A stretch of DNA of 63,591 bases, counting the filler, from Reticulomyxa filosa (lineage: Eukaryota > Protista > Foraminifera): NCBI GenBank assembly GCA_000512085.1. It is 15 parts of 15 records of this genome, joined end to end, with 100 filler letters (N's around TTAATTAATTAA, not from the genome) between each part and the next. Parts side by side here need not be neighbours in the genome. Positions count along the whole stretch, not along the records: positions 24,328 to 33,771 come from ASPP01018789.1; 14 more parts are not named here. One strand, 5' to 3'. The first letter of the stretch is position 1. Every line of letters starts with the position of its first letter. Shown piece after piece: positions 3,333 to 33,771 of this stretch. The translations under genes and the position numbers were made by a program. The notes beneath the pieces were generated by a model. It worked only from the letters and a program-made list of their open reading frames with translations. It did not search any database and was not told where the DNA came from.

Positions 3333-5699
3333 AAAAAAATTCAAACTGAAAAATACAAAGATTTCTTAAATTGGAAATAAAACTTCTTTTTTTTAAATAG
3401 AAATTCTATTTCAATCAAAGGTTGAACATGTTATACCTTCATTATTTGACTTTTTTCATTGTCACCAATAATGTTTTGTTTTTTCAATTTCTTCTTTTTT
3501 TGTAATCGATTGTGTATACAAAAACAAAGATTCTCTAACCACTGCATTTGCAATTTTATTCACGAAAAATTAACATTTACTTGAATTCTTTTTTAAATGT
3601 CCACACATTCTGATGAATCAAAAAATTATTTAGTTATTAATAAAAATATGGAGTCTTTTTAATTTGACAAAAATTGAGGATTCGTTTACATATTAAGGAA
3701 TAACATATTTTGTTTTTTCTAAATATTATTTTTAACAAATCAGTTTTTCATAAATAAAATTGCAAATGTTTGTATTGTTCATTTTTAAACGATCTTTTGT
3801 TTGTAGATATTAGCATAATAAATAGCATGTATATTTGCGATAAAAAGTGAAATATTTGAAATTTAATAAGTTTTTTATTTGAAACGAAGTTATATAACAA
3901 CAAAGCAACAAATTTGAAAATAACTGAGCAATATTATAGTACACATTGATTCTTGTATTAACAATTCGTTAATAGTAATTACATAAATATTATACATATT
4001 ATCGATGTGCACATGTTCGATTTGAAATTTAAAAATCTAACTAATTTGGCTAGTGAAAAGTTTGAACTAATGTAATAATGAAAGTATCCAAAATGCAACG
4101 TAGTGGTACAACTTTGTCTCTGGAGTAAGTATTTAAGTTTGTAAGCCGTTTTGTTGTACGTTGCACACTCACACTTAAGACTTGTCTGTCGTTACAAGTA
4201 TACACAGCTTGCTATTTTTCATACATTCGTTCAGAACCTGATACTTGTAATCCGCTTTTTTGTGGAATAAAATGTCGAGATAAAAAATTTCAACTGAAAC
4301 TTTAAGACGTGCAAAAAGTTCTCCAAACTTGGCCTAGTTTGTCCATATATACAACTGATATGCGGGAGGACTCTTCATCATGATGGGATTTTTCTGCAGC
4401 TATGTTAAAACCTTTGGAAAATTGGAGTTTGTTTTGTTCGGCACAAAGCACTTCATTTTTCAAATTGTACTGCAAAAAAAGGGCTGTTGTCTTTTTCCCT
4501 CAGCTCAAATGGGTTGGAATAATCTACTAAAAAAACATTAAGAATGGAAGAAAATAGAAATATTTAGCCAAAAAAATTGACAAAAGAGATTCGCTTTTAA
4601 TTACACAGAACTGATAGCAAATAGGTTATTTCAAGGCGTACTGACGACAAGGATTCAAGAAGGAGACAATAATAGAAAAGATACACCTTTTCTTGGTTTA
4701 CTGTATTCAAATTCGAAAGTCTCACGAAACCCTCCAAATAAACAACGAAACAAAAAGTCATTGCAAGGCGATAAAACAGCAAATTCACAAATTGCTCCAA
4801 AAACGAAAACAGGTTACCAATGGTAGCACAAACAAAAACATGGAACCCACACAACAATTGATTCCAAATTATTTCAATTTTTGTTTAAAAACTCTTTCAA
4901 TAAACTTGAACAATTTGTAATTTGATCCTCAAGTGCAAAGACTCAGTGGGAAATGGTTTGAATAAAACCGACAATGGTGCTATAGAATCCATAAACGCAT
5001 AATAATAATAACAAGAATATGAAGACCTCTGTACAAACAGTAAACACAATCAACACGTGAGTAACAGTTTCTCTTTTTTTATTATGTTTTACTTTTGTTG
5101 GTTACAACTCTTACCGACAAATACTTGTTCCCATGGATCTAATACAGATGCTGATGTAAGCATAGAATAATGGTGCTTCAAATCTTTGATAGTTTTCCAC
5201 ATATTAAATTCTAAGCGCGCCTAAATGTGAGATGCACGAGCGGATTTTTTAGCTGACAGTTTAGCACCTTTTTTAAAACAAAAAGCTGAACATTTACTTT
5301 TCAAAAATTTATTTACAACTAAGCAGGCCACAATACTAAATAATAGTCACAACAATCCGCCAAAAAAAAAGTTTAAAATTGTTAACGTTAACTTTTCCAC
5401 CAGAACAGAGCGTTAGAAATTTAATTATATATTTGAATTTAAAGGGTAGGAAAAAGAGTGGGACGGGGGGCAAAACGAAACAGTTTTTGTTCCTCAAAAT
5501 TTTAGGGTTATTCAATAAGTACAGGACTTTGAGTTTTGTTTTTATTAAACATATTGGCAAACAAAGTTGTTGTTGAATGCAAGTCACTGTTAAGATCATT
5601 TTGAGGAGGAAGCATGTGTTTGTTTGCATTATTGACGGGACAAGACAAACAAGCCTACAATCTACACCTACATGGACCGCAACAACATACAAAAAAAAA

Positions 5700-6050
5700 A
5701 AAGGGATCAAATCTAATAAAAGTATTTGTAGAAGAAAACGGAGATGAGACTACCGAATCGAAGTTACCACCATCAAAAACAGCGAATAGTCACGGCAGCA
5801 TTGTGGGTCATGGTCGGCTGTTAAGTATGATGTGGTCGAAAATGAGCCCATCGAATGGAGTAGTGCCACGAATCGAGCAGCGTTCGAATTCGACAACTTC
5901 AGTGACGAGCCAATGGACAACGGTGGCTATTACGCCAACAACAACAGTGGAAGAAGTGTTGCGAATTGTTGCAAAGAAGAGAGACTTAGCGTATGAGTCT
6001 GGCAAATACGAATTGGTTATCACAGATACGGACGCTGACACTACTGAAAG
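5700..6050 (+). CDS. Internal exon with a Ras-association/ubiquitin-like segment, partial gene
   Basis: WTTVAITPTTTVEEVLRIVAKKRDL...YELVI matches the RA/ubiquitin-fold pattern 'T(v/l)x(v/i)xxxTTvxEvixxvxxK'. Likely GTGAG donor near 6050. Confidence 0.5.
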
Positions 6051-6180
6051 TGAGCGTTTTTTTTTTTAATAAGTCTAATAAGAAAAACATTTTTTTGATT
6101 GGGTGTAAAAGTGATTATCTCTACAATAAAAAAAAAAAAAAAAAAAAACTGGGGGTAAATAATTCAAAGGTTTTGAAACC

Positions 6181-6280
6181 NNNNNNNNNNNNNNNNNNNN
6201 NNNNNNNNNNNNNNNNNNNNNNNNTTAATTAATTAANNNNNNNNNNNNNNNNNNNNNNNNNNNNNNNNNNNNNNNNNNNN
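6181..6280. other. Artificial contig spacer N44-TTAATTAATTAA-N44 (first of 14)
   Basis: Identical 100-bp spacers with a stop-codon linker also at 9864, 15091, 17780, 24228, 33772, 35895, 38265, 47614, 52251, 54324, 58253, 59529 and 60852. Confidence 0.99.
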
Positions 6281-7284
6281 TATCATGGCAAACACAATTT
6301 AGTGGATTAAGATAAATAATTAATCCAACAAAAACTTAAAAAATTCAATATAGATAAGAGCAAAAGGTGAAAGGCCATCATCATTGTGAGTATCACAATA
6401 TGTGCTAAGATATTATGTCTATGACTCTATTCGTCCTGATGTGATCTAACATTTGCCTTGCTAAGACATGAAAAATTTTAAAAGAATTCGAAAAATTAAA
6501 CATTATAAATCAAGAAATCAATAAAAGCGCTGTGAATGAACAATACACAGTATAGTTGATATCAAGCTATTAAACGAAATTTTTGTGCAGTTTTACTGCA
6601 CAAACAAAATATTTAACGTATACCGTGCAACCACACAATAAGTCGGCACAATACAACAATAAGAATTGCGGTCAAATTAATGCTTATGAACAACGGAAAA
6701 AATTTTTATTTGTCTAAGATTAATGTAAACTTTTAAACAGTTTCATTCCAAACAAACTTAAAATATGTTTAAAACCGTATTAACATTAAAAGACGTTATA
6801 TCTAGAAAAAATAACAGCGCAAAGCAGTGAAAAAAAATTTACACTATGAGAAGAGAAAATAGAGACATAGACGCAGAGTTTTCCTACTCCAATACACTTT
6901 TAAGGATTGTTTTTTCTGAAGAGTAGTGTTAGCTTTTAAAAAGAAAGCGTCGCAAAATATCATGTTACCAAATTAGTTTTTCGCAGGTAGTTTTTTGAGC
7001 CGAGTGCAATAGCGTCACTTAAAATGGACGCCGGGAACGAAAAGTGACGAGAGGGACAACAGATTAAACTAATGCCCTATCTTCGTCGTAAATGAATTTC
7101 CAATTTGTATTACGTTTGTAATACAAGAGGAAAGGTTTAGTTTGGACACATTACCTCACAACGCCTTAACAACAGGAACAAAAAAAAAGAAAAAACAAAA
7201 AAGGAATATCTTACATGAATACTTTCAACTCTCAATGAAGCAAGCGTTTTTTTTTTGGATCAAATCAATAAAACAAGAAAAAGT

Positions 7285-23050: not shown

Positions 23051-24374
23051 TGCAAGAGGAATGCGTATTACTTGTCTGAATTCAAAAAAAAGTTGATATG
23101 CCTTCAGCCAAAAAAAAAGTGTAGCTGCTCAGCAACTGTCTTTTCTACGTTGTGACTGTTTTCGCTCTACAAAAAAATTTTGTATATCCATTGTTCTCAG
23201 ACTAATTTTTTGTTATTATGCTTTAAATAACTAACTTTTCCTTGACAAAGACCAATTTATACAATTTTTCTCAAGTTTATTATAATTTTGCTAACATTTT
23301 AGCACAAACATTTCTAAAACTTGAAGTCAAACAGATAAAATTTCAATGTGTCAGCAGCTACAAATTATAAGAAAATATTGTCTAATGTTAACTATTCCTT
23401 TAAAGTTTTCTTGAAAATTCCAGGCTTGTCTGAGTCTTGTGAGATGTACGTATGGCATACAGTCTCGTAAGAGTTAATGTGATTAAAAGTGACATCTTAT
23501 GAACAACTTAGAAAAGGATGATGAACATTTTGTTTCTTAAACTTTTCTTGTTTGTCTGTTGTATTTTGGGGATTATTTGTTTTAATGCATTCATTGTTGA
23601 AATAAAGTACACTAATCGGACTAACTCTTCCTATTTTTTATTTGAAAGAAAAACAAGTATTATTGACAAAACAACATATTCTATATTTTGTATTTAAGTG
23701 AACAAATTTGATTTAAATTTTAAATTTTTTGTGGCTTTTTCTTTGTTTGCTGTTAGTCAGCTTTCTTTTGTGTTTTATCACTATATCCTATGAAGCATTT
23801 TATTATTTGAAATTTGAGTAATTTACATAAAATATGGTTTACAACAAAAACAAAATTTATAATTGCTTCACCATAATACTTTTACTTTCTGTGTTTATTT
23901 TATGTTAAATACTTTAATATTAGTCAGTATAATTAATTTTAAACTTTTTTTGTTTGGTAAGATAGTAAAATATACAGTTGCGACAAAAAAAAATGGTCAA
24001 TAATAAAATATGAACTTTTTGTGTTTCTAACAAAAATTTTAGTAGCAAATTTGATTATTTTTTCTGGTTTACTGGATATACGTTTACACTTTTATAAGTA
24101 GTTTGTAAAAACAATAAACAAAAATTTAGAAAAATTGGAAGAAAAAAATTTTCAAAAATGATTGGAGTTGAGGTACAATCTCAACATCACCTTGAGGTAG
24201 GTAGCAGAATGTATTTGCTTTTTACAANNNNNNNNNNNNNNNNNNNNNNNNNNNNNNNNNNNNNNNNNNNNTTAATTAATTAANNNNNNNNNNNNNNNNN
24301 NNNNNNNNNNNNNNNNNNNNNNNNNNNAAATAAATAAATATATACATAAATATTTATATGTATACACAAACACG

Positions 24375-25629
24375 CATACTCTTTAATAGAGTTCTCCTTC
24401 GAATTGTCGATATCACGTATCGATGGATGAAAAGGAACATCTTGCTGTTCCTTGATGCCATAAACAGGGAATCCGTGTCGAATCATCAATGACGGATAGT
24501 CGAGAGCAGGGAAAAACAGCAGGTCTTCTTCCATGTCTTGCATGAGACTATAAATGGACTCCTCCTTACTCGTTCCGTTCCGTTCATGCTTCGCATATGC
24601 AGTCGGTGTGCTCACGGATGGCTCGCGCGTACATGACAAATGAATATCGTCCATTTGATCCATTGACATTCGTATACTCGAATTCAAAGTCGAATTGGTG
24701 ATCAAATCGTTCTTTTCCAGCATCAAAGTATCGTTGGTACTGCTGCTTCGACTATTACGATTGCTTTTGTTTTTGCTATTGTCATTGCTATTGCTATTGC
24801 TGTTACTGTTGCTGTTGCTGGTTTTGCTCCTTTGTCGTCGATTCAAATCGCGGGGACTAATGTTCTGCAACTGCTTCAACAGAAACAATTGTCTCTGACT
24901 TCCAATCGATGCGTTCGACAACACCAACGAAGACGATATGCTTTCGGAATGGCTCATCCACGATTCCAACGAATACGAGACATTGGATATCGAATCACTT
25001 CCGTGTGTGTGATGAAAAGGATTGAAATATGCATTGCTGTTGTAATGACTATACATATTATTGCAATTGCATGGAATTATATTGCTGTTATTGTTGCCGT
25101 TGTTCGAATTGACACCATAGACACCATTTTGCTGATATGTGGGGTCGCTATCCCAATCCGATGAGGCATGTGAGGTTGGTGACGAACAGCTCGATGAATA
25201 TTCATTGTCTGATGCTGAAAGAGATTTCGTCGAACGAGAGGAGCTATTCGATTTGGGTGAGCCTCCGCTGTCTCCATTTTCTTCACTTGATTCCGATGTC
25301 GTACCTTCTTCGTCTGAATTTACTTCCTCTACCTTTTTGTTCAAAGGCTCATCACCTTCTTCTCCTTCTTCTTCTTCTTCTTCTTCTTCTTCTGTCCATG
25401 GCTCATCCACTAAGGTCGTGTTTCCATTCTCTATCATGTCGTTCCTTCTTTTGTACGGCAGTTCTGCTTTATTTCTTTTCTGGTTCACCAATCGCGTCAA
25501 CGCTGACAGAGATTGTGGCGTTGATGCTGCTGAAACTGGACTATCAGTTCCATCTTCAAAAAAATTTTCTTTTGATTTTAAAAGCGATTCAAGACTCACT
25601 AAAGTTATTGTTTCTTCATTTCTTGCCAT
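24375..25629 (-). CDS. Ser/Glu/Asn-rich low-complexity protein, 5' exon, truncated by gap
   Basis: Long ORF of about 420 aa with poly-E and (SN)n, ending in TA-rich intron-like sequence. Confidence 0.6.
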
Positions 25630-26202
25630 TTTTTCTTTAGTTTTGGTTTTTCCTTTTTTTTTTCCCGTTCCTCTTTCACTACTCGATTAATCACGTTTGC
25701 TGAATATATTAAAGCAAAAAATTTGCACTTGCTATTGGAACTGGAGGTTATTAAGTAATACTCGAATTTGTAGACAGCAAGCGAGTTTTAAACTTTTGGG
25801 AAAATATCGTGAACATTTGACTCTTGCTTTGCAAGAAAGCGATATTTCAGAAATCTGTTGATCATATCGGCTTGAAGCTTTTATTATTGTCAGCATTAGC
25901 CTTCTCCAAAATAAAAAATGAAAGGCGGTAATAGAAGTGACTTACTTCTCTTTCTTGTTTCAACAAAACAGTATATTGGCAGATAAAAAAACGATAAAAT
26001 GGAAGTTGCATTTTAAACAATGGGGAAAAAATTGTATAGCGTTCGGTAACTTGAGCTTTAAGAATCGATTTTCTGGGAAAATCAGCAACGTTTGTTTTTA
26101 TTGTATCAAAAATGAAACCAATCTTGTCTCCCAGTTTTCCCCCTCCCCTCAACTTCCAATGAACCAACGAAAGCAAAACAAACAAAAACAAAAAAAAAAA
26201 GA

Positions 26203-28306
26203 ATGAAAGAGCGATCCGAGAATATGCGAAGTCGCCTTTTTGGACGTGGTAAGAATCAGTCTGGTGAACAAAAAAGTTATGAAAAAGGAAGGGGGGGACA
26301 AAGCCATAGGCAAACGTATACATATGGCTGTTTGTATTGTTTGTTGTGTGGGTTGAATCGCATGCAGTCAGCGAAATGCTTTCGGGCACTTGGGGCGTGG
26401 AAATACCGCACAGTGGTGGTAACGCCCAAGTTCAAGGGACGGAACCGGTGGACAAATCATTAAATATGATGCTTCCTTTGGTTCAAATCAATGAAAAAAC
26501 ATTGGAAGTGATGTTGTTGCCATTGAATGGAGATATTTGCAATAATCCAAGCACTCAACAATATTTACATGGAATTATTAAATCGGAGCAATGTTATATT
26601 GAAATAAATAATGAAGAAAGCGGACTCGTACAAATCGTATGGTACAATGGCGAGTCAAACACAGAGAAGCAGCTATTGAATGTTCTTTCTCCCAAAGATA
26701 CTCAATCTTCACAATCGCAGTTATTCGCCGAAATGGACAGCAAAGACGAACACGAAAAAGATAAATCGAATGCGAGCATTGCGACTACAACTGCGAATGT
26801 AAACACAGATGCGAATGCGAATGCGAATGCAAATACAAACGCAAATGCAAAAGCAGACGAAACAAGCACTGTTGCCAATGAACATGACATACATACCCAA
26901 AATTCACAATCCAATGCAAGTGCGATCACAAACAACAAACACACAATATTGGAAGGGACTATTGAAAATTTCTGTATCCGTTGGAATGATGGGTCGCAGT
27001 GGCATAAAATTCAGTCTATTCACAATGACACCGACACGGCCACTGAAAACGAGGATCGCACATTAGAAGCCAATGTGATGACGCCAGTTTCGGGTACTGG
27101 GTCCTTCTTCAATTCTACCAATCCCACTGTCTCTGCTGTTGCCAAAAATACATCCGACGCAAGCTCTGCAAACACTGGTGCTTCCAATAATACGCTGCCT
27201 ACACCACGGGGTCAAGATTTGGTCTCCATTGATTCCTTAGGTTTTTTTTGTTTTTTTTTTTTTGAGAGAGAGGGACCAATAGATGTGATTAGTTGACTCC
27301 CTTTTTATAAAAAAAAAAAAGGAAAAAGTAACAACGACGGAAACAAACCTGAAGTAACACAAAAGTTACGAGAGACAGAAGCTCGTGTACGAGCGTTGGA
27401 GGACAAGTTAACTTTGAGCAAATCACAGACGCAGACCATGATGACACAATTGGCAGATTTGTCGAAACAATATGCGGACATCCAAACAAAATACAAAGAC
27501 ATGGAAAAAAAATACACGGACGCAAGCAATCAATTGGAAGCAGCCCAAATGGAGGCCAAAACAATGAAAGAGTCATTCGCAGAGATAACAGACCAATTAC
27601 GTAAAGCCAAAGACGAAGTAGTATATAAAAATGTGCAAGACACACAAGTAAAGCTGTTACAAATGAAAGAAGAAAATGCACAATTCCAACAACAAATCAA
27701 CGCACAACAACAAAAGATTTTGATGTTAGAGGAGCAATTACAACGCTCACAATTGTCTGCCAAGGTTATATGCATATACATATATATTTTTTTTTTATTT
27801 TTTTATTTTTGTACCTTTTTTTTCTACCTTTTTTTTCTAAAAAGAAAAACAAATGCAATGAATACACAAAATATCTAAAATACATACATATTATATATTG
27901 AAAACAGCAACATATTAAAACAACACAAGAATTGGAAACAAGACTAAGTGAACAAGAGAAACAATATAATGAAAAGACCACACACACGAGTGAATTGAAT
28001 GAAAAAATAACTTCGTTGCAACAACTTGTGAATGAGCTCACTCTCACAAAGGAGACATCGTCCAAACGATTTGAAGAAAAACTGGCCGTGTTGCAGCAAC
28101 GACACACGAACGAAATCCAACAATTGGAGCGAGGCTTTCAGGAAACATTGCGAACAAATCAAAAGCAAATCGATGAGTTGGAAGCATTACGAAACAGTTA
28201 TGCTAAAAAAAATACCAGTTTGTCCAAAGATGTTCGACGACTGATCCAACAATTGGAGGCACAAACAAAAACGACTGTCGCAAGTATGGGCACTGGATTT
28301 GCTCCT

Positions 28307-28341
<35 letters not shown>

Positions 28342-29665
28342 GACATTTGGCGGTACTTCCAGCCCTTTCGCTGCTGGCAATGATTCCGTCGAGAATCAAC
28401 AACTCCAAGAAATGGGACGCTTGCGACATGAAAACATACGACTATCTGAAGAATTGATTCGAAAATCACAAAGCTTAGTGGATGCACTGCGGGCCATTGC
28501 CGAGTTGCATGAAAACGCAGAAGATGAAACGTTGAAAATTACTCAATCGTTGTCCATGGCAACACGACAAAAGCCTGACCAACATACCCCTGGCCATTAT
28601 CATTATCATCATCATCGACATGCAAGTGGAACTGGCGTTGAATGTTCTCACAGCAACCAAGACTCGTGTTCTGAAGGCTTAGATGCCAAAACCAATGAAG
28701 TTGTCTCACTCGATGAAGTAACCGACCACTTGCATCATCAAATGGTTATGTGCGTGTATATTTTGTTTTTTGACCCGAATGTTTTAAAAAAGATGTGTCT
28801 TGCATGTATGTATAGACAAAACATCCCTCAGGCCAATTGTTGAGTGAAACCCCGTCAAGAAGCAACATAGAAAGCAATGACACTCACAATGGTCATACCA
28901 ACCATTCCAATAGCCGAAGCAAGAATACCAATGCCAAAGATCGGTTGAACGAAATTCGCAACCGAGTTGGTGGACGTATCAAAAAGTCACTCGAAGATGT
29001 TCAAAAAAAAGTAAAAGAAAAGAGATTAATGTCTCCGACCGCCGCCTTGGCGAATCGATTGAATTCGCACTCCGCTGTGGTTTCTGGGCATTTGAGCAGA
29101 GGTCAATTGCAAAGTCAATGCGATACTTTGCAATCGTTGGCAAATGAACTGGCCCTCACTGTTGAACAAAAAGAGGAGGTAACTTATAGATAAATATATG
29201 TACATATATTTTTTTTTTGTCTACTCTCAAACGAGATAAATGGTGTAATGGAATAATTTTTAGTGAAAAGATATGTTTTTTTTATAGATGTTGGATAGTT
29301 TGCGATTTGCCAACACGTTCTTGGGAAGAAGAGTTATTGCACTGGAGCGATTGTTACACATGCAACCAGGAGCCGCAATTCCAGACGAACAAGCACTAAT
29401 GGAGCAAGCTTTAGGAATAGAAAACTCTTCGGCTGATATATCTGATGCGAATGCAAACCAAAATCAAAATAAAGATGAACAAAAGAATGCTCAAACAAAC
29501 TTACAAAATGTATCCGATCAACCACAGAGCCAAAATCAAACGGAATACAAGAAAGAAACAGAAGGCACTGCTGAAAAAAATAATATAATTGTAGATATTG
29601 AGGGCTCAAAAGAAATACCAAAACTGGAAGACAATACCAAGAACACCTTAAACCAAGCACTATGA
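26203..29665 (+). CDS. Multi-exon long coiled-coil protein of unknown function
   Basis: Successive same-strand ORFs (26337-27296, 27396-, 27932-, 28837-, 29288-29665) separated by T/TA-rich GT-AG introns, with extensive heptad repeats. The 5' end is uncertain. Confidence 0.7.
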
Positions 29666-30028
29666 CGGAAAATAATGTGTCTTTTTCATTTCAAAAAAAC
29701 AAAAAATTTGTTTTTGTTGCACTTTTTGGGTTTGACCCAATCCACTGGCTGCAAAAAAAATTAAAAAATCTTTAAAAGTTTTTCCTTAAAATTATTCAAT
29801 GAAACAATGCATCACCATTTATCTATTGTAAATGTAATGTAAATTTACAATATGGCAATATTCAAAATAAAGAATGGTTCATTAAGGTTGTTAATTGAAA
29901 TGAACTCGGTTTAAAAAAAACCATATACTGTACTTTTTTCGGCCTACTTATTAATAAATGCTTTAAAAAAAAAATAATTATTATGCCACAAACTCTTCAA
30001 CAACCTTCCGACAAATCAAATACAGAAC

Positions 30029-30552
30029 TCAAAGAAGTTGTTCACCCACTCCTTCTTTCTGTTTCAAGGTTGGATAATACTTTCCTGAATCATGTCCGGG
30101 ATCAACAATCTCCACCTTGTTGTCCCCAGGAGATCCGCTGACATTAACTACTGTTGGACGACCACCAATTTTGCTAAGACACGCACCAAATGTTAGTGAT
30201 AATGCATCTCCGATCATCTTTGCCAATGGCGTATATGCCATTGAAAATACTTTCTGTATATTATCAAACATGCTCTTTAAGCTAATTATGGCTCATTCCT
30301 CCAAAAAAAGACAAGAAGACGTATAAACATAACAGTGGCCGGATGGACAAGCCAAATCAATAAAAATTCAAGAGCACCCATCACAAGGCCCCAACCAAGA
30401 GATAAAGGAACACCAATCAATATTGACAAAAAGTTGAAAATTCCTTTTCGGCAAGCACTGTAGGTCTGCCTTTGAACGTTTCGCACTGATTCCCATTCAT
30501 CACTGTCAGGAAAAGTAACATCAAAAGAAATTTGTAAAGGATCCTTGTTCAT
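30029..30552 (-). CDS. Caveolin-like protein (two exons, 154 aa)
   Basis: Exons 30552-30334 and 30274-30029 with a 59-nt GT-AG intron. LSILIGVPLSLGWGLVMGALEFLLIWLVHP matches the caveolin-1 intramembrane segment [30 protein letters not shown], and the alignment continues without gaps across the splice. Confidence 0.82.
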
Positions 30553-30973
30553 TGTCTCTAAATACGGTGAAGAGGATATTTATTTCTATTAAAAGGTGTC
30601 GAACGTTACCAAGACTTTTCTTGACGTTCGGTTTCCACTAGTTTTTTTAGAGTTGGAAACAACCGGCTGCATTAAAAACAATTGTTTTTTATTTACTTCA
30701 TTCTCTTTCACATTTAGCTAAGTCAAGAAAATAGAGTCAACAGTGAAACATGAAATACGCAATCAACAAAGGTGCTTTTTTTTTTTCCTGAAACAAAGAA
30801 ATGGAAAACCAAACCAAACAAAACACAAGTAAAATAACACAAAAGCAGCAACTAAACAACAAAATGACAAACATTCAACGGTTCTTTTGATTTTTGTATA
30901 ATATATTTTTTTGTAACAAAAACATTTGAAAAAAGCAACGTGCAAAAAAAAATGCTTTGTTCCTTTTTCGAAA

Positions 30974-33686
30974 TCAATCAAAATTGACTTGATCAATGCA
31001 ATGCCTGCATGTAGGGCATGCACGCTTATCTGCCAACCATTTGTCAATTTCTTTTTTATGAAAATAGTGGAAACACGGCAAAGTTTTGACTTCATCGCCT
31101 ATAACACAAATTTTTTTTTACTCCATTGAATTAAGAGATTATTTAGAAAACATGATAAAAGAGACAAACCTTTTTTGAAGTCTTCAAAGCAAATACTGCA
31201 TTGCTGATTCTTGCTCATCTGTAAGTCGGTTTCGGTGATCAAATGTGTCGGCAAGGATTCAATTGACACCGAATGTTTTGTCTTCAAAAGCAAATGTTCT
31301 TCTGACACGAAAGATAATTCATCACTTTCAAAGAAACGATGACTAGAAAAAATAGGAGATCGTTTATATATATATATATAACATACATGTACACACAACT
31401 GTATATATATATACATATATATTGCATGTTTTTCTCAACTCACAAGCAAGATCATTTTATTTACAATACTTGTGTGTAGAGAGCCACCGTGCATTGCAAA
31501 AAAGAGATGAGAAAAACAAAAAAATTAGTTCGAAACGTGTCAGTTATTCTTGCCCCAGGGAGATCTTCAAAAGCCATCAGCTCTCGCATGGTAGGACTGA
31601 TGCTAACACTGCCTCTGGACAAGACGCTACGTGGAGACAAGACAATGACCGACGACGGCAGCGAGAAAGGCGTCAATCCTGTCGGGTTTGATCGATCAGC
31701 GCTTAGCGAAGTTCGCGGGATAGGTGTTCGTGGCGTAGGCATTGAAGGCACAGGAGTACGTGGGATAGAGAGATCTGCGGCCCGTTCTATGCGATGATGC
31801 GATGTGGCTGCACGTTCCTGCTCGTTGTCCCATTGTGAAGACTCTTCGGATGGATGAACGGAAGTTTGAATGCGAAAAGAATGAAGAGGAGCAACAAACG
31901 CCTGCGCATGAGAATGAGAATGAGAATGAGAATAAGAGTAAGAATGAGGATGAGGATTGGGATGAGGATGAGGACGAAGATAATTACTATCGTGTGATCG
32001 TGTCCGTTCACGATTGAAATGGTTAATTGTTGGCCGAGGACTAAACGCATGGACACGACTACTGCCTGTCCTTTCGAATCGATGTGGATCTCTTCGTCGT
32101 CTTGGAAATTGTTGTTGTTGCTGTTGTGATGGTTTATTTCTTGGCTGTGTTTGAGACGAAATGTTGCCTGGCATCGTTGGCGGGCTTGTCATGGGTGGTG
32201 TTGTCTCGCGCGCCGAAGAAGACGACCCGGTTGGCTCATTTCTCGTCAACTGCGACAAGATTGTCTGACTATGACTTTGCTGCTGTAACTCCTCTGTGGC
32301 CGACTGTGGGAAACACAGCAATTGCACTCCTTGTTTAGTTGGCGAATGTGAAAACAAAATAAACAAAGAGAAAAAGAGAGAATGTGAAATTACATTAAAA
32401 AAAAAAAGTGTATACGTATTTATATATATATATATATATATAGTAACCATTGCAGTGACGGGAAGTGAGGACAACGGTGCGAGTTGAAGCGGAGAAGGAG
32501 ATGGTGGTTGAGATGAGGAGGACAGTCGCGGTGAAGGAGAAGACATGGTACCAATATTTGGCGTAAACGAGTGAATCCAATGATAACTGAGCGGCTGTCG
32601 ATTTTGAAATACACTAACGCCACTACTGATTCGACGATGTTCGTGGTTTGGAAATTCACTCCTGCTCGGCCTCGTCGTCCCCATTGTCATACTCCCTCGA
32701 CGAGAATAAGTCCTTGCCTCGCCAGCCATGTTAATCCTATTGCCAATCAATCCCGCCGATGCATTCGCGCCTTTCAATGGCGGTACATTGTTTCCCCCCG
32801 TTCGGTGTCGTGTGGCCTGTGTCTGCACTTGTGCTTGCATTTGTGCTTGCATTTGCGCTTGCATTTGCGTCTGTGCGGAATAGTCGGACAGCTGTGGAGC
32901 TGCATATCGGACGTGATTTGTGGCAGACAAGAATAAGGGAATATTTCTTCGTAGAGTGGTGGTGGGATGCAAGGGGGTGTCTGGCCACAATGACGTCTGT
33001 TGTGTGGAGGTATTGAGGGAAGACGAAGAAGAAGAAGAAGAAGAAGACAATGAGGATGAAGAGGCTGAAGGAGAAGAAGAGAAAGGGGATGATGATGAAG
33101 GCAGAGAATAAATAGGAGGTGGAATTTGCAACGTGCGTTCAGACGTGTGATTTACATTTGTGGGTGCAACTGACTGAAAGCGTATTCTTTGGTGAGACCC
33201 AATATGGATTGGAGGCGGTGGAAGATGAAGAGAAGATGATGATGATGAAGGAGAAGAAGGAGGAGAAGGAGCAGGAGGAGGTGGTGGTGGAACAGGAGAT
33301 GATTCATTTTCATTTTTATATATACTCTCTTCTTCTTCTTCTTCTTCTTTTGCTTGTTCTCGTAATTCTTCTTCTTCTTCTTCTTCTTCTTCTTCTTTTA
33401 CCCCTTCTTTTTCTTCTTCTTCCTCTTTTGTTATGTTTCGATTTCTTGGCTCATTTCTACTCCGATTTTTGTGTCGATTGCTTTTGTTAGCTGCCATACA
33501 AACACGTCCGCTGGCATAGTCGCGTCCTCGATCGCGACCACGTCCACGTCCACGTGCTCGTTCACGTCGATGCAATAGTGGTGGAGGGGTGTTGCCAATC
33601 GACGAGTCCGACAGAAATCCGTTCATTGATGAATCCCGAACTACTTTCGCTGGCCTTGGGTACACTGTTGTTGGTATCAATCCCAT
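30974..33686 (-). CDS. RING-H2 E3 ubiquitin ligase-like protein with long disordered N-terminus
   Basis: Spliced C-terminus CSICFEDFKKG/DEVKTLPCFHYFHKKEIDKWLADKRACPTCR, stop at 30974. Upstream P/S/E/Q-rich ORF with internal introns. The 5' end may lie beyond the gap. Confidence 0.8.
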
Positions 33687-33735
33687 GCTTTCCCATTGTC
33701 GTGTGCTTTTTTCCTCTTCTTTTCTCTCATTTTTT

Positions 33736-33771
<36 letters not shown>

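Follow-up and report, generated by a model that had tools for sequence, protein, structure and literature searches.

A two-exon caveolin-family gene on a Reticulomyxa filosa contig and its Foraminifera-labelled relatives

Within a 63,591-nucleotide stretch of Reticulomyxa filosa DNA (assembly GCA_000512085.1; 15 parts joined end to end with filler, the whole of which we call the window), we identified a real and intact two-exon gene of the caveolin family. It occupies positions 30029–30552 on the minus strand, in the part that comes from ASPP01018789.1 (24,328–33,771). We consider it likely that this is a native, expressed gene for a 147-aa caveolin-family protein, and that it belongs to a diversified clade in which the only named members are labelled Foraminifera.

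Caveolins have been treated as present in Metazoa and in Salpingoeca rosetta, with none found in Capsaspora or Creolimax (2025 J Cell Biol, PMC12330381). The S. rosetta protein F2U793 is the only non-animal caveolin described so far, and the origin of the family has been placed at or near the choanozoan ancestor, with a transfer between choanoflagellates and animals left open (PMC12330381). Our full-text literature search found no report of foraminiferal or rhizarian caveolins, nor of Reticulomyxa caveolin or PF01146 genes. The database proteins of the Foraminifera-labelled clade already carry automatic Pfam labels, so these sequences are not unseen; no description or interpretation of them was found. 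Depending on the host organism, the window gene would represent a new member of the caveolin family in an unexpected lineage.

Gene structure and splice site

In the ORF list the gene appears as two adjoining frames on the minus strand, one of 88 aa (30286–30552) and one of 80 aa (30029–30271), and the initial annotation was right to read these two unremarkable ORFs as parts of one gene. Translation places exon 1 at 30334–30552. Its ATG (30552–30550) is the first after an in-frame TAA and is followed by 72 codons, 73 in total, which encode a degenerate signature or hook (FDVTFPDSDE), a scaffolding-like helix and a 33-residue hydrophobic segment ending in HPAT. A phase-0 GT..AG intron of 80 nt (30254–30333, minus strand), with in-frame stops on read-through, separates it from exon 2 (30029–30253), which comprises 74 codons and a TGA (30031–30029). 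Exon 2 encodes a spoke-like region (KVFSMAYTPLAK...FGACLSK), then the conserved G-x-x-V-V-N-V motif, and at the C-terminus a polar tail of ~36 residues.

The initial annotation had proposed a 59-nt intron (30333–30275) and a product of 154 aa. Its donor GT at 30333/30332 stands. Its acceptor AG (30275–30276, minus strand) is in frame but used by no contig, and the acceptor given by both a public contig and the homologues is 30255/30254. The contig, 392 nt long and ~97% identical to the window, comes from the public run X1 and covers 29969–30253 and 30334–30438; it joins 30334 directly to 30253, so that precisely 80 nt are missing, bounded by GT..AG on the minus strand. In tblastn searches with the full-length homologues P0007, P0010 and P0011, the match resumes at 30253. 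Likewise, homology to exon 2 in our family alignment (A1) begins at the Lys encoded at 30253, leaving no room for seven extra residues. When the longer exon 2 of the 59-nt splice was aligned with the family profile (A2) using hhalign (probability 95.8%, E 7e-9), the match began two residues ahead of this Lys, at positions that the homologues fill from exon 1, so that the seven additional residues, SMFDNIQ, have no place. They have a counterpart in no homologue and are most likely intronic. Since the contig skips to 30253 and the homologues restart there, the intron is 30333–30254, exon 2 is 30253–30029, and the product is 147 aa, the same length as that of the closest relative, P0003. The acceptor at 30276/30275 may still see minor alternative use, as both acceptors are in frame and the 80-nt splice is known from a single contig. 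For annotation, the consequence is that ORF callers split this gene, and that 147 aa is the correct length to record.

The X1 contig, the only public contig that holds the gene, stems from a run dated 2015 that we can only guess to be RNA. It also provides a 3' untranslated region of at least 60 nt (29969–30028, minus strand). Over 29969–30438 it differs from the window at ~2.6% of positions and by one 1-nt deletion in the 3' untranslated region, and must therefore derive from another strain, an allele or a recent paralogue rather than from the assembled individual. Four of the five differences in the coding part are synonymous third-position changes, the fifth being a Pro-to-Ser change in the tail, which indicates that the coding sequence is under purifying selection.

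Membership of the caveolin family

Searches with the window protein were made exon by exon. Exon 1 alone scores above the curated cut-off of Pfam Caveolin (PF01146) in HMMER, with 38 bits against a cut-off of 25 and an E-value of 1.9e-9 over profile positions 37–91 of 133. It also matches human caveolin-1 (CAV1; PDB: 7SC0) with an E-value of 7.2e-6, residues 2–71 aligning collinearly with CAV1 60–132. Scores of this size lie far outside what chance would give, and the observation of a caveolin is real. Aligned to 7SC0 in HMMER, exon 1 shows again the matches that the initial annotation had listed along the intramembrane hairpin (LS, G, P, WG, L, FL, IW and the closing P), all within the 33-residue segment. 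The same alignment bears out its remark that the FEDVIAEP signature is degenerate: the aligned segment reads FDVTFPDS, in which the F-D/E-x-V of CAV1 is kept.

With exon 2 alone, neither Pfam Caveolin nor any of the solved caveolins gave a detectable match, and in hhalign this exon matches the C-terminal half of its own family. The residue-by-residue register with the spoke helices of human caveolin-1 that had been suggested across the splice is thus not borne out, and the corrected acceptor shifts that register by seven residues. Each of the ten family members searched scores above the cut-off of Pfam Caveolin, at 35–49 bits. Several of them span profile positions 18–131 of 133, and full-length homologues remain collinear with the model through the exon 2 region, up to position 131.

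A profile of the family retrieves all three solved caveolin discs, with E-values of 3e-13 for 7SC0, 3.9e-10 for 9DN1 and 8.7e-10 for 9DN0, the latter two being the caveolins of S. rosetta and Strongylocentrotus purpuratus, respectively (PMC12330381). Profile–profile comparison of the family with the animal caveolin hits in hhalign gave a probability of 99.3% and an E-value of 2.5e-20 over 91 columns, a match that extends ~20 residues beyond the conserved Pro and does not reach the strand. In the alignments, the hydrophobic segment of ~33 residues, with its G/P, WG and closing Pro, is preceded by the scaffolding helix. When the new clade and the animal rows are taken together, conservation is 90% or higher at W54, G55, F63, W67 and P71, as numbered in P0003; at the signature motif, the first Phe alone varies hardly at all among the rows.

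We considered whether a hydrophobic hairpin could have arisen by convergence, with no true homology to caveolins. The similarity is strongest in the hydrophobic segment, where composition can inflate scores, and exon 2 lacks direct similarity to animal caveolins. Convergence is nevertheless highly improbable, as the match extends over the polar signature and scaffolding region ahead of that segment, the other matches of exon 1 in the PDB are non-significant (E above 1), the relatives are collinear with almost the whole Pfam model, and a language-model search of the ESM Atlas returned caveolin clusters only. The window gene belongs to the caveolin family.

Genomic neighbourhood

A gene on the same strand, with a split RING-H2 finger at its end, precedes the caveolin gene by ~420 nt. 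This upstream gene (30974–33686, minus strand) consists of a long low-complexity ORF rich in Ser, Pro, Glu and Gln, followed by the intron-split finger, the halves of which read C-S-I-C-F-E-D-F (within 31099–31416) and P-C-F-H-Y-F-H ... C-P-T-C-R (within 30974–31081). On the other side, a multi-exon coiled-coil gene on the plus strand (27396–29665) is convergent with the caveolin gene. The splice donor of the caveolin gene, GTTATG, resembles the GTTATA of the coiled-coil gene, and the GC content is continuous across the piece. Donor style and composition are therefore common to the caveolin gene and its neighbours, in agreement with their earlier description as native-looking.

Throughout 24328–33771, introns and spacers are rich in (TA)n-like and other dinucleotide runs, which appear as IYIYIY in ORF translations, and the coding regions contain long homopolymeric or dipeptide runs (E, S, N, NS, HS and QM). 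The same intron style is seen at a caveolin locus of another organism (L004).

None of eight neighbouring ORFs matched a Pfam family above threshold, and the 741-aa ORF in this neighbourhood has no identical sequence on record. A homology search with the coiled-coil ORF found two relatives. On the metagenome contig chicken_3 NODE_14907 (L009:268–2640), a collinear orthologue of the coiled-coil gene reaches up to ~65% identity in segments; no caveolin gene lies beside it on that contig, which consequently provides no synteny support.

Relatives, phylogeny and host lineage

A phmmer search with exon 1 against 1.84 billion cluster representatives returned 33 hits at E-values up to 1e-3. The top ~25 representatives form a distinct family, and the lower part of the list consists of bona fide animal caveolins, annotated as such in Rotaria sordida and in fishes and echinoderms (Engraulis, Tachysurus, Thalassophryne, Amphiura and Strongylocentrotus). 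Over exon 1, identity reaches 45–60% within the separate clade (E down to 1e-31), compared with 28–40% for the best animal hits (E 1e-4 to 1e-6). Members of the family share a pattern that reads D-P-L ... F-D-x-x-F-P-x-S-D-E ... R ... Y ... R-K-G-x-F-N-x-L-S ... W-G in the first half and F-x-x-I-W ... P-x-x-K ... P-x-A ... F-G-x-C-L-x-N ... G-x-x-V-N-V in the second. A word-indexed protein search with the family profile (A2) found only four members, all already known; the same search with the 88-aa ORF, and a scan of viral contigs with exon 1, gave no relative.

The named members of the clade come from EukProt and are labelled Bolivina argentea (P0010, P0011) and Nonionella stella (P0017, P0018, P0034), labels that refer to transcriptomes of collected specimens. 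One further member, P0004, is an MMETSP transcript. The remaining relatives are unlabelled contigs from NCBI, ENA, JGI and Logan, including GCA_024449935.1, and most are from metagenome assemblies.

The phase-0 intron of the window gene falls just past the Pro that closes the hydrophobic segment, and this position recurs at other loci of the clade. L004 has an 85-nt GT..AG intron (445–529) at the homologous position, P0006 on L001 carries a 28-residue in-frame insertion there, and the ORF-called proteins P0005, P0008, P0009 and P0012 run into non-homologous sequence at the same point. The second caveolin domains of the genes on L002 are also split there. Such a recurrent intron position is a sign of long residence in a eukaryotic lineage.

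Between 308 and 5216, L002 (ENA ERZ893790 contig k147_3123392, GC 27%) holds three tandem caveolin genes, each encoding a single chain in which a Cys-rich segment at the N-terminus and one predicted transmembrane helix are followed by two caveolin domains, the second of which is the one interrupted at the family's usual intron position. We came across no earlier account of a double caveolin with a membrane anchor. On L008 (ENA ERZ26692669), a low-GC contig of 7.7 kb, three caveolin-domain genes lie within ~2 kb (4730–6865). The caveolin family is thus clustered locally in at least two organisms.

We computed a maximum-likelihood tree from 35 rows and 126 columns, in which the window was represented by exon 1 only. 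P0030, P0031, P0036, P0037, P0039, P0013 and P0020 were left out, and the tree included neither choanoflagellate nor sponge rows nor a true root. The window sequence pairs with P0003 (88/92), and both lie in a 28-row group that contains every Foraminifera-labelled row and stands apart from the six animal rows (94/53). With modest support, the window sequence is placed outside the animal caveolins sampled; the tree does not give the order of events.

These data bear on the possibility that the contig is an animal or choanoflagellate contaminant carrying an ordinary holozoan caveolin. In its favour, Metazoa and S. rosetta are the only other known sources of caveolins (PMC12330381). We judge such an origin very unlikely: the animal hits are more distant in exon 1 than the separate clade, the tree sets the group of the window apart from the animal rows, and the neighbouring genes lack animal-type Pfam domains and resemble the caveolin gene in donor motif and composition.

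A second possibility is that the caveolin is real and the clade belongs to some other eukaryote, neither animal nor foraminifer (for example a prey organism, a symbiont or a protist living in association), which contaminates the foraminiferal transcriptomes and is also the source of the contig. P0011 and P0034 are 150-aa caveolin-family proteins that are 100% identical in the B. argentea and N. stella data sets; cross-contamination or a shared associated organism may explain this identity, which weakens attribution at the species level. Most relatives come from unlabelled metagenome assemblies, and the orthologue of the neighbouring coiled-coil gene was found in an unrelated metagenome sample. 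Set against this is the presence of several distinct paralogues under the Bolivina and Nonionella labels (P0010, P0011, P0017, P0018 and P0034), and we regard a contaminating eukaryote as unlikely, although less so than a holozoan source.

We therefore favour a host that is foraminiferal, or at least non-holozoan, and hold this with good confidence on the basis of the Foraminifera-labelled relatives and of the gene style that the caveolin gene has in common with its neighbours. The earlier proposal of a caveolin homologue from a non-animal is upheld, on the strength of the matches to Pfam and to solved caveolins, the profile–profile comparison, the labels of the relatives, and the donor style and composition shared with the neighbours.

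Comparison with known caveolins and predicted organization

By homology, the window protein contains the elements of a caveolin in order: a degenerate hook and signature, the scaffolding-like helix, the 33-residue hydrophobic segment, a spoke-like amphipathic region, a V-N-V motif and the polar tail of ~36 residues. The V-N-V motif lies 36–40 residues downstream of the closing Pro, a distance similar to that between P132 and the strand at 170–176 in CAV1 (PMC12330381). The initial annotation had read TVVNV as beta-strand-like. The motif itself holds up as a family-conserved G-x-x-V/I-N-V; the strand does not appear in the monomer model of a homologue, where none is predicted and pLDDT is below 50 in this region.

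Compared with human CAV1, which forms the 11-mer 8S disc seen in 7SC0, the resemblance covers the signature and hydrophobic segment described above, and the family profile aligns out to CAV1 residue 169. The two proteins differ in several respects. The window protein has no N-terminal variable region, because it starts at the equivalent of CAV1 residue 59, and its pin motif is at most a remnant. The FEDVIAEP signature is preserved only in degenerate form, and in the spoke region no sequence similarity can be recognised. Furthermore, the polar tail extends ~36 residues past the putative strand, whereas CAV1 ends at the strand; we liken this tail to the C-terminal variable region described in other caveolins (PMC12330381).

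The S. rosetta caveolin F2U793 (PDB: 9DN1) resembles the window protein in being a caveolin of a unicellular eukaryote without the pin motif (PMC12330381). Its signature, in an accepted caveolin, is similarly degenerate. The family profile and F2U793 have in common an F-D-x-x-F-P-E ... E-S-V-R-K motif that is absent from the animal signature. In contrast to the window protein, F2U793 has 233 aa, a long N-terminal region and a hydrophobic segment without WG. The Type I caveolin of S. purpuratus (PDB: 9DN0) is similar in size (159 aa), and its pin motif is likewise at most a remnant (PMC12330381); here the sequence match is limited to the N-terminal two thirds.

Because the window protein has these elements by homology, it is expected to be a monotopic protein that packs into a disc embedded in one leaflet. 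Most likely, the 33-residue hydrophobic segment and the amphipathic helices would insert into the cytoplasmic leaflet, and copies of the protein would pack side by side into a membrane-embedded disc, as the human, sea-urchin and choanoflagellate caveolins do. By analogy with these proteins, the disc would remodel or buffer the membrane.

Structure predictions were made for P0003, the closest full-length relative, as a proxy for the window protein. The AlphaFold2 monomer is a single long helix with a pLDDT of 76. Foldseek found no match to this model in the PDB, and a shape search of the Atlas returned unrelated helices. A wide search with VIA-align gave coiled-coil ties only; 9DN0 is among them at a Z-score of 6.0, which carries no weight. 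A complex prediction for four copies of P0003, run without controls, scored 0.00. The monomer models and fold searches are uninformative, and neither they nor the complex score count for or against a caveolin fold.

Implications for caveolin evolution and function

Taken as a whole, the family makes it reasonably likely that Foraminifera (Rhizaria) carry a diversified and long-resident set of caveolins, with a phase-0 intron of their own, several paralogues per species, gene clusters, and double-domain forms with a transmembrane anchor. Caveolins would then extend beyond animals and choanoflagellates. If this is true, either the origin of caveolins lies far before the choanozoan ancestor and was followed by wide loss, or the gene passed between supergroups by an ancient transfer. 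If a distant supergroup has a well-separated caveolin clade with multiple paralogues, the timing and mode of origin of the caveolin disc would have to be reconsidered, and such very divergent natural sequences would test which residues the architecture of the disc needs. For the organism itself, the fast-remodelling reticulopodial membranes of foraminifera would possess a caveolin-disc system free of cavins, a setting in which one could ask what caveolins do without caveolae.
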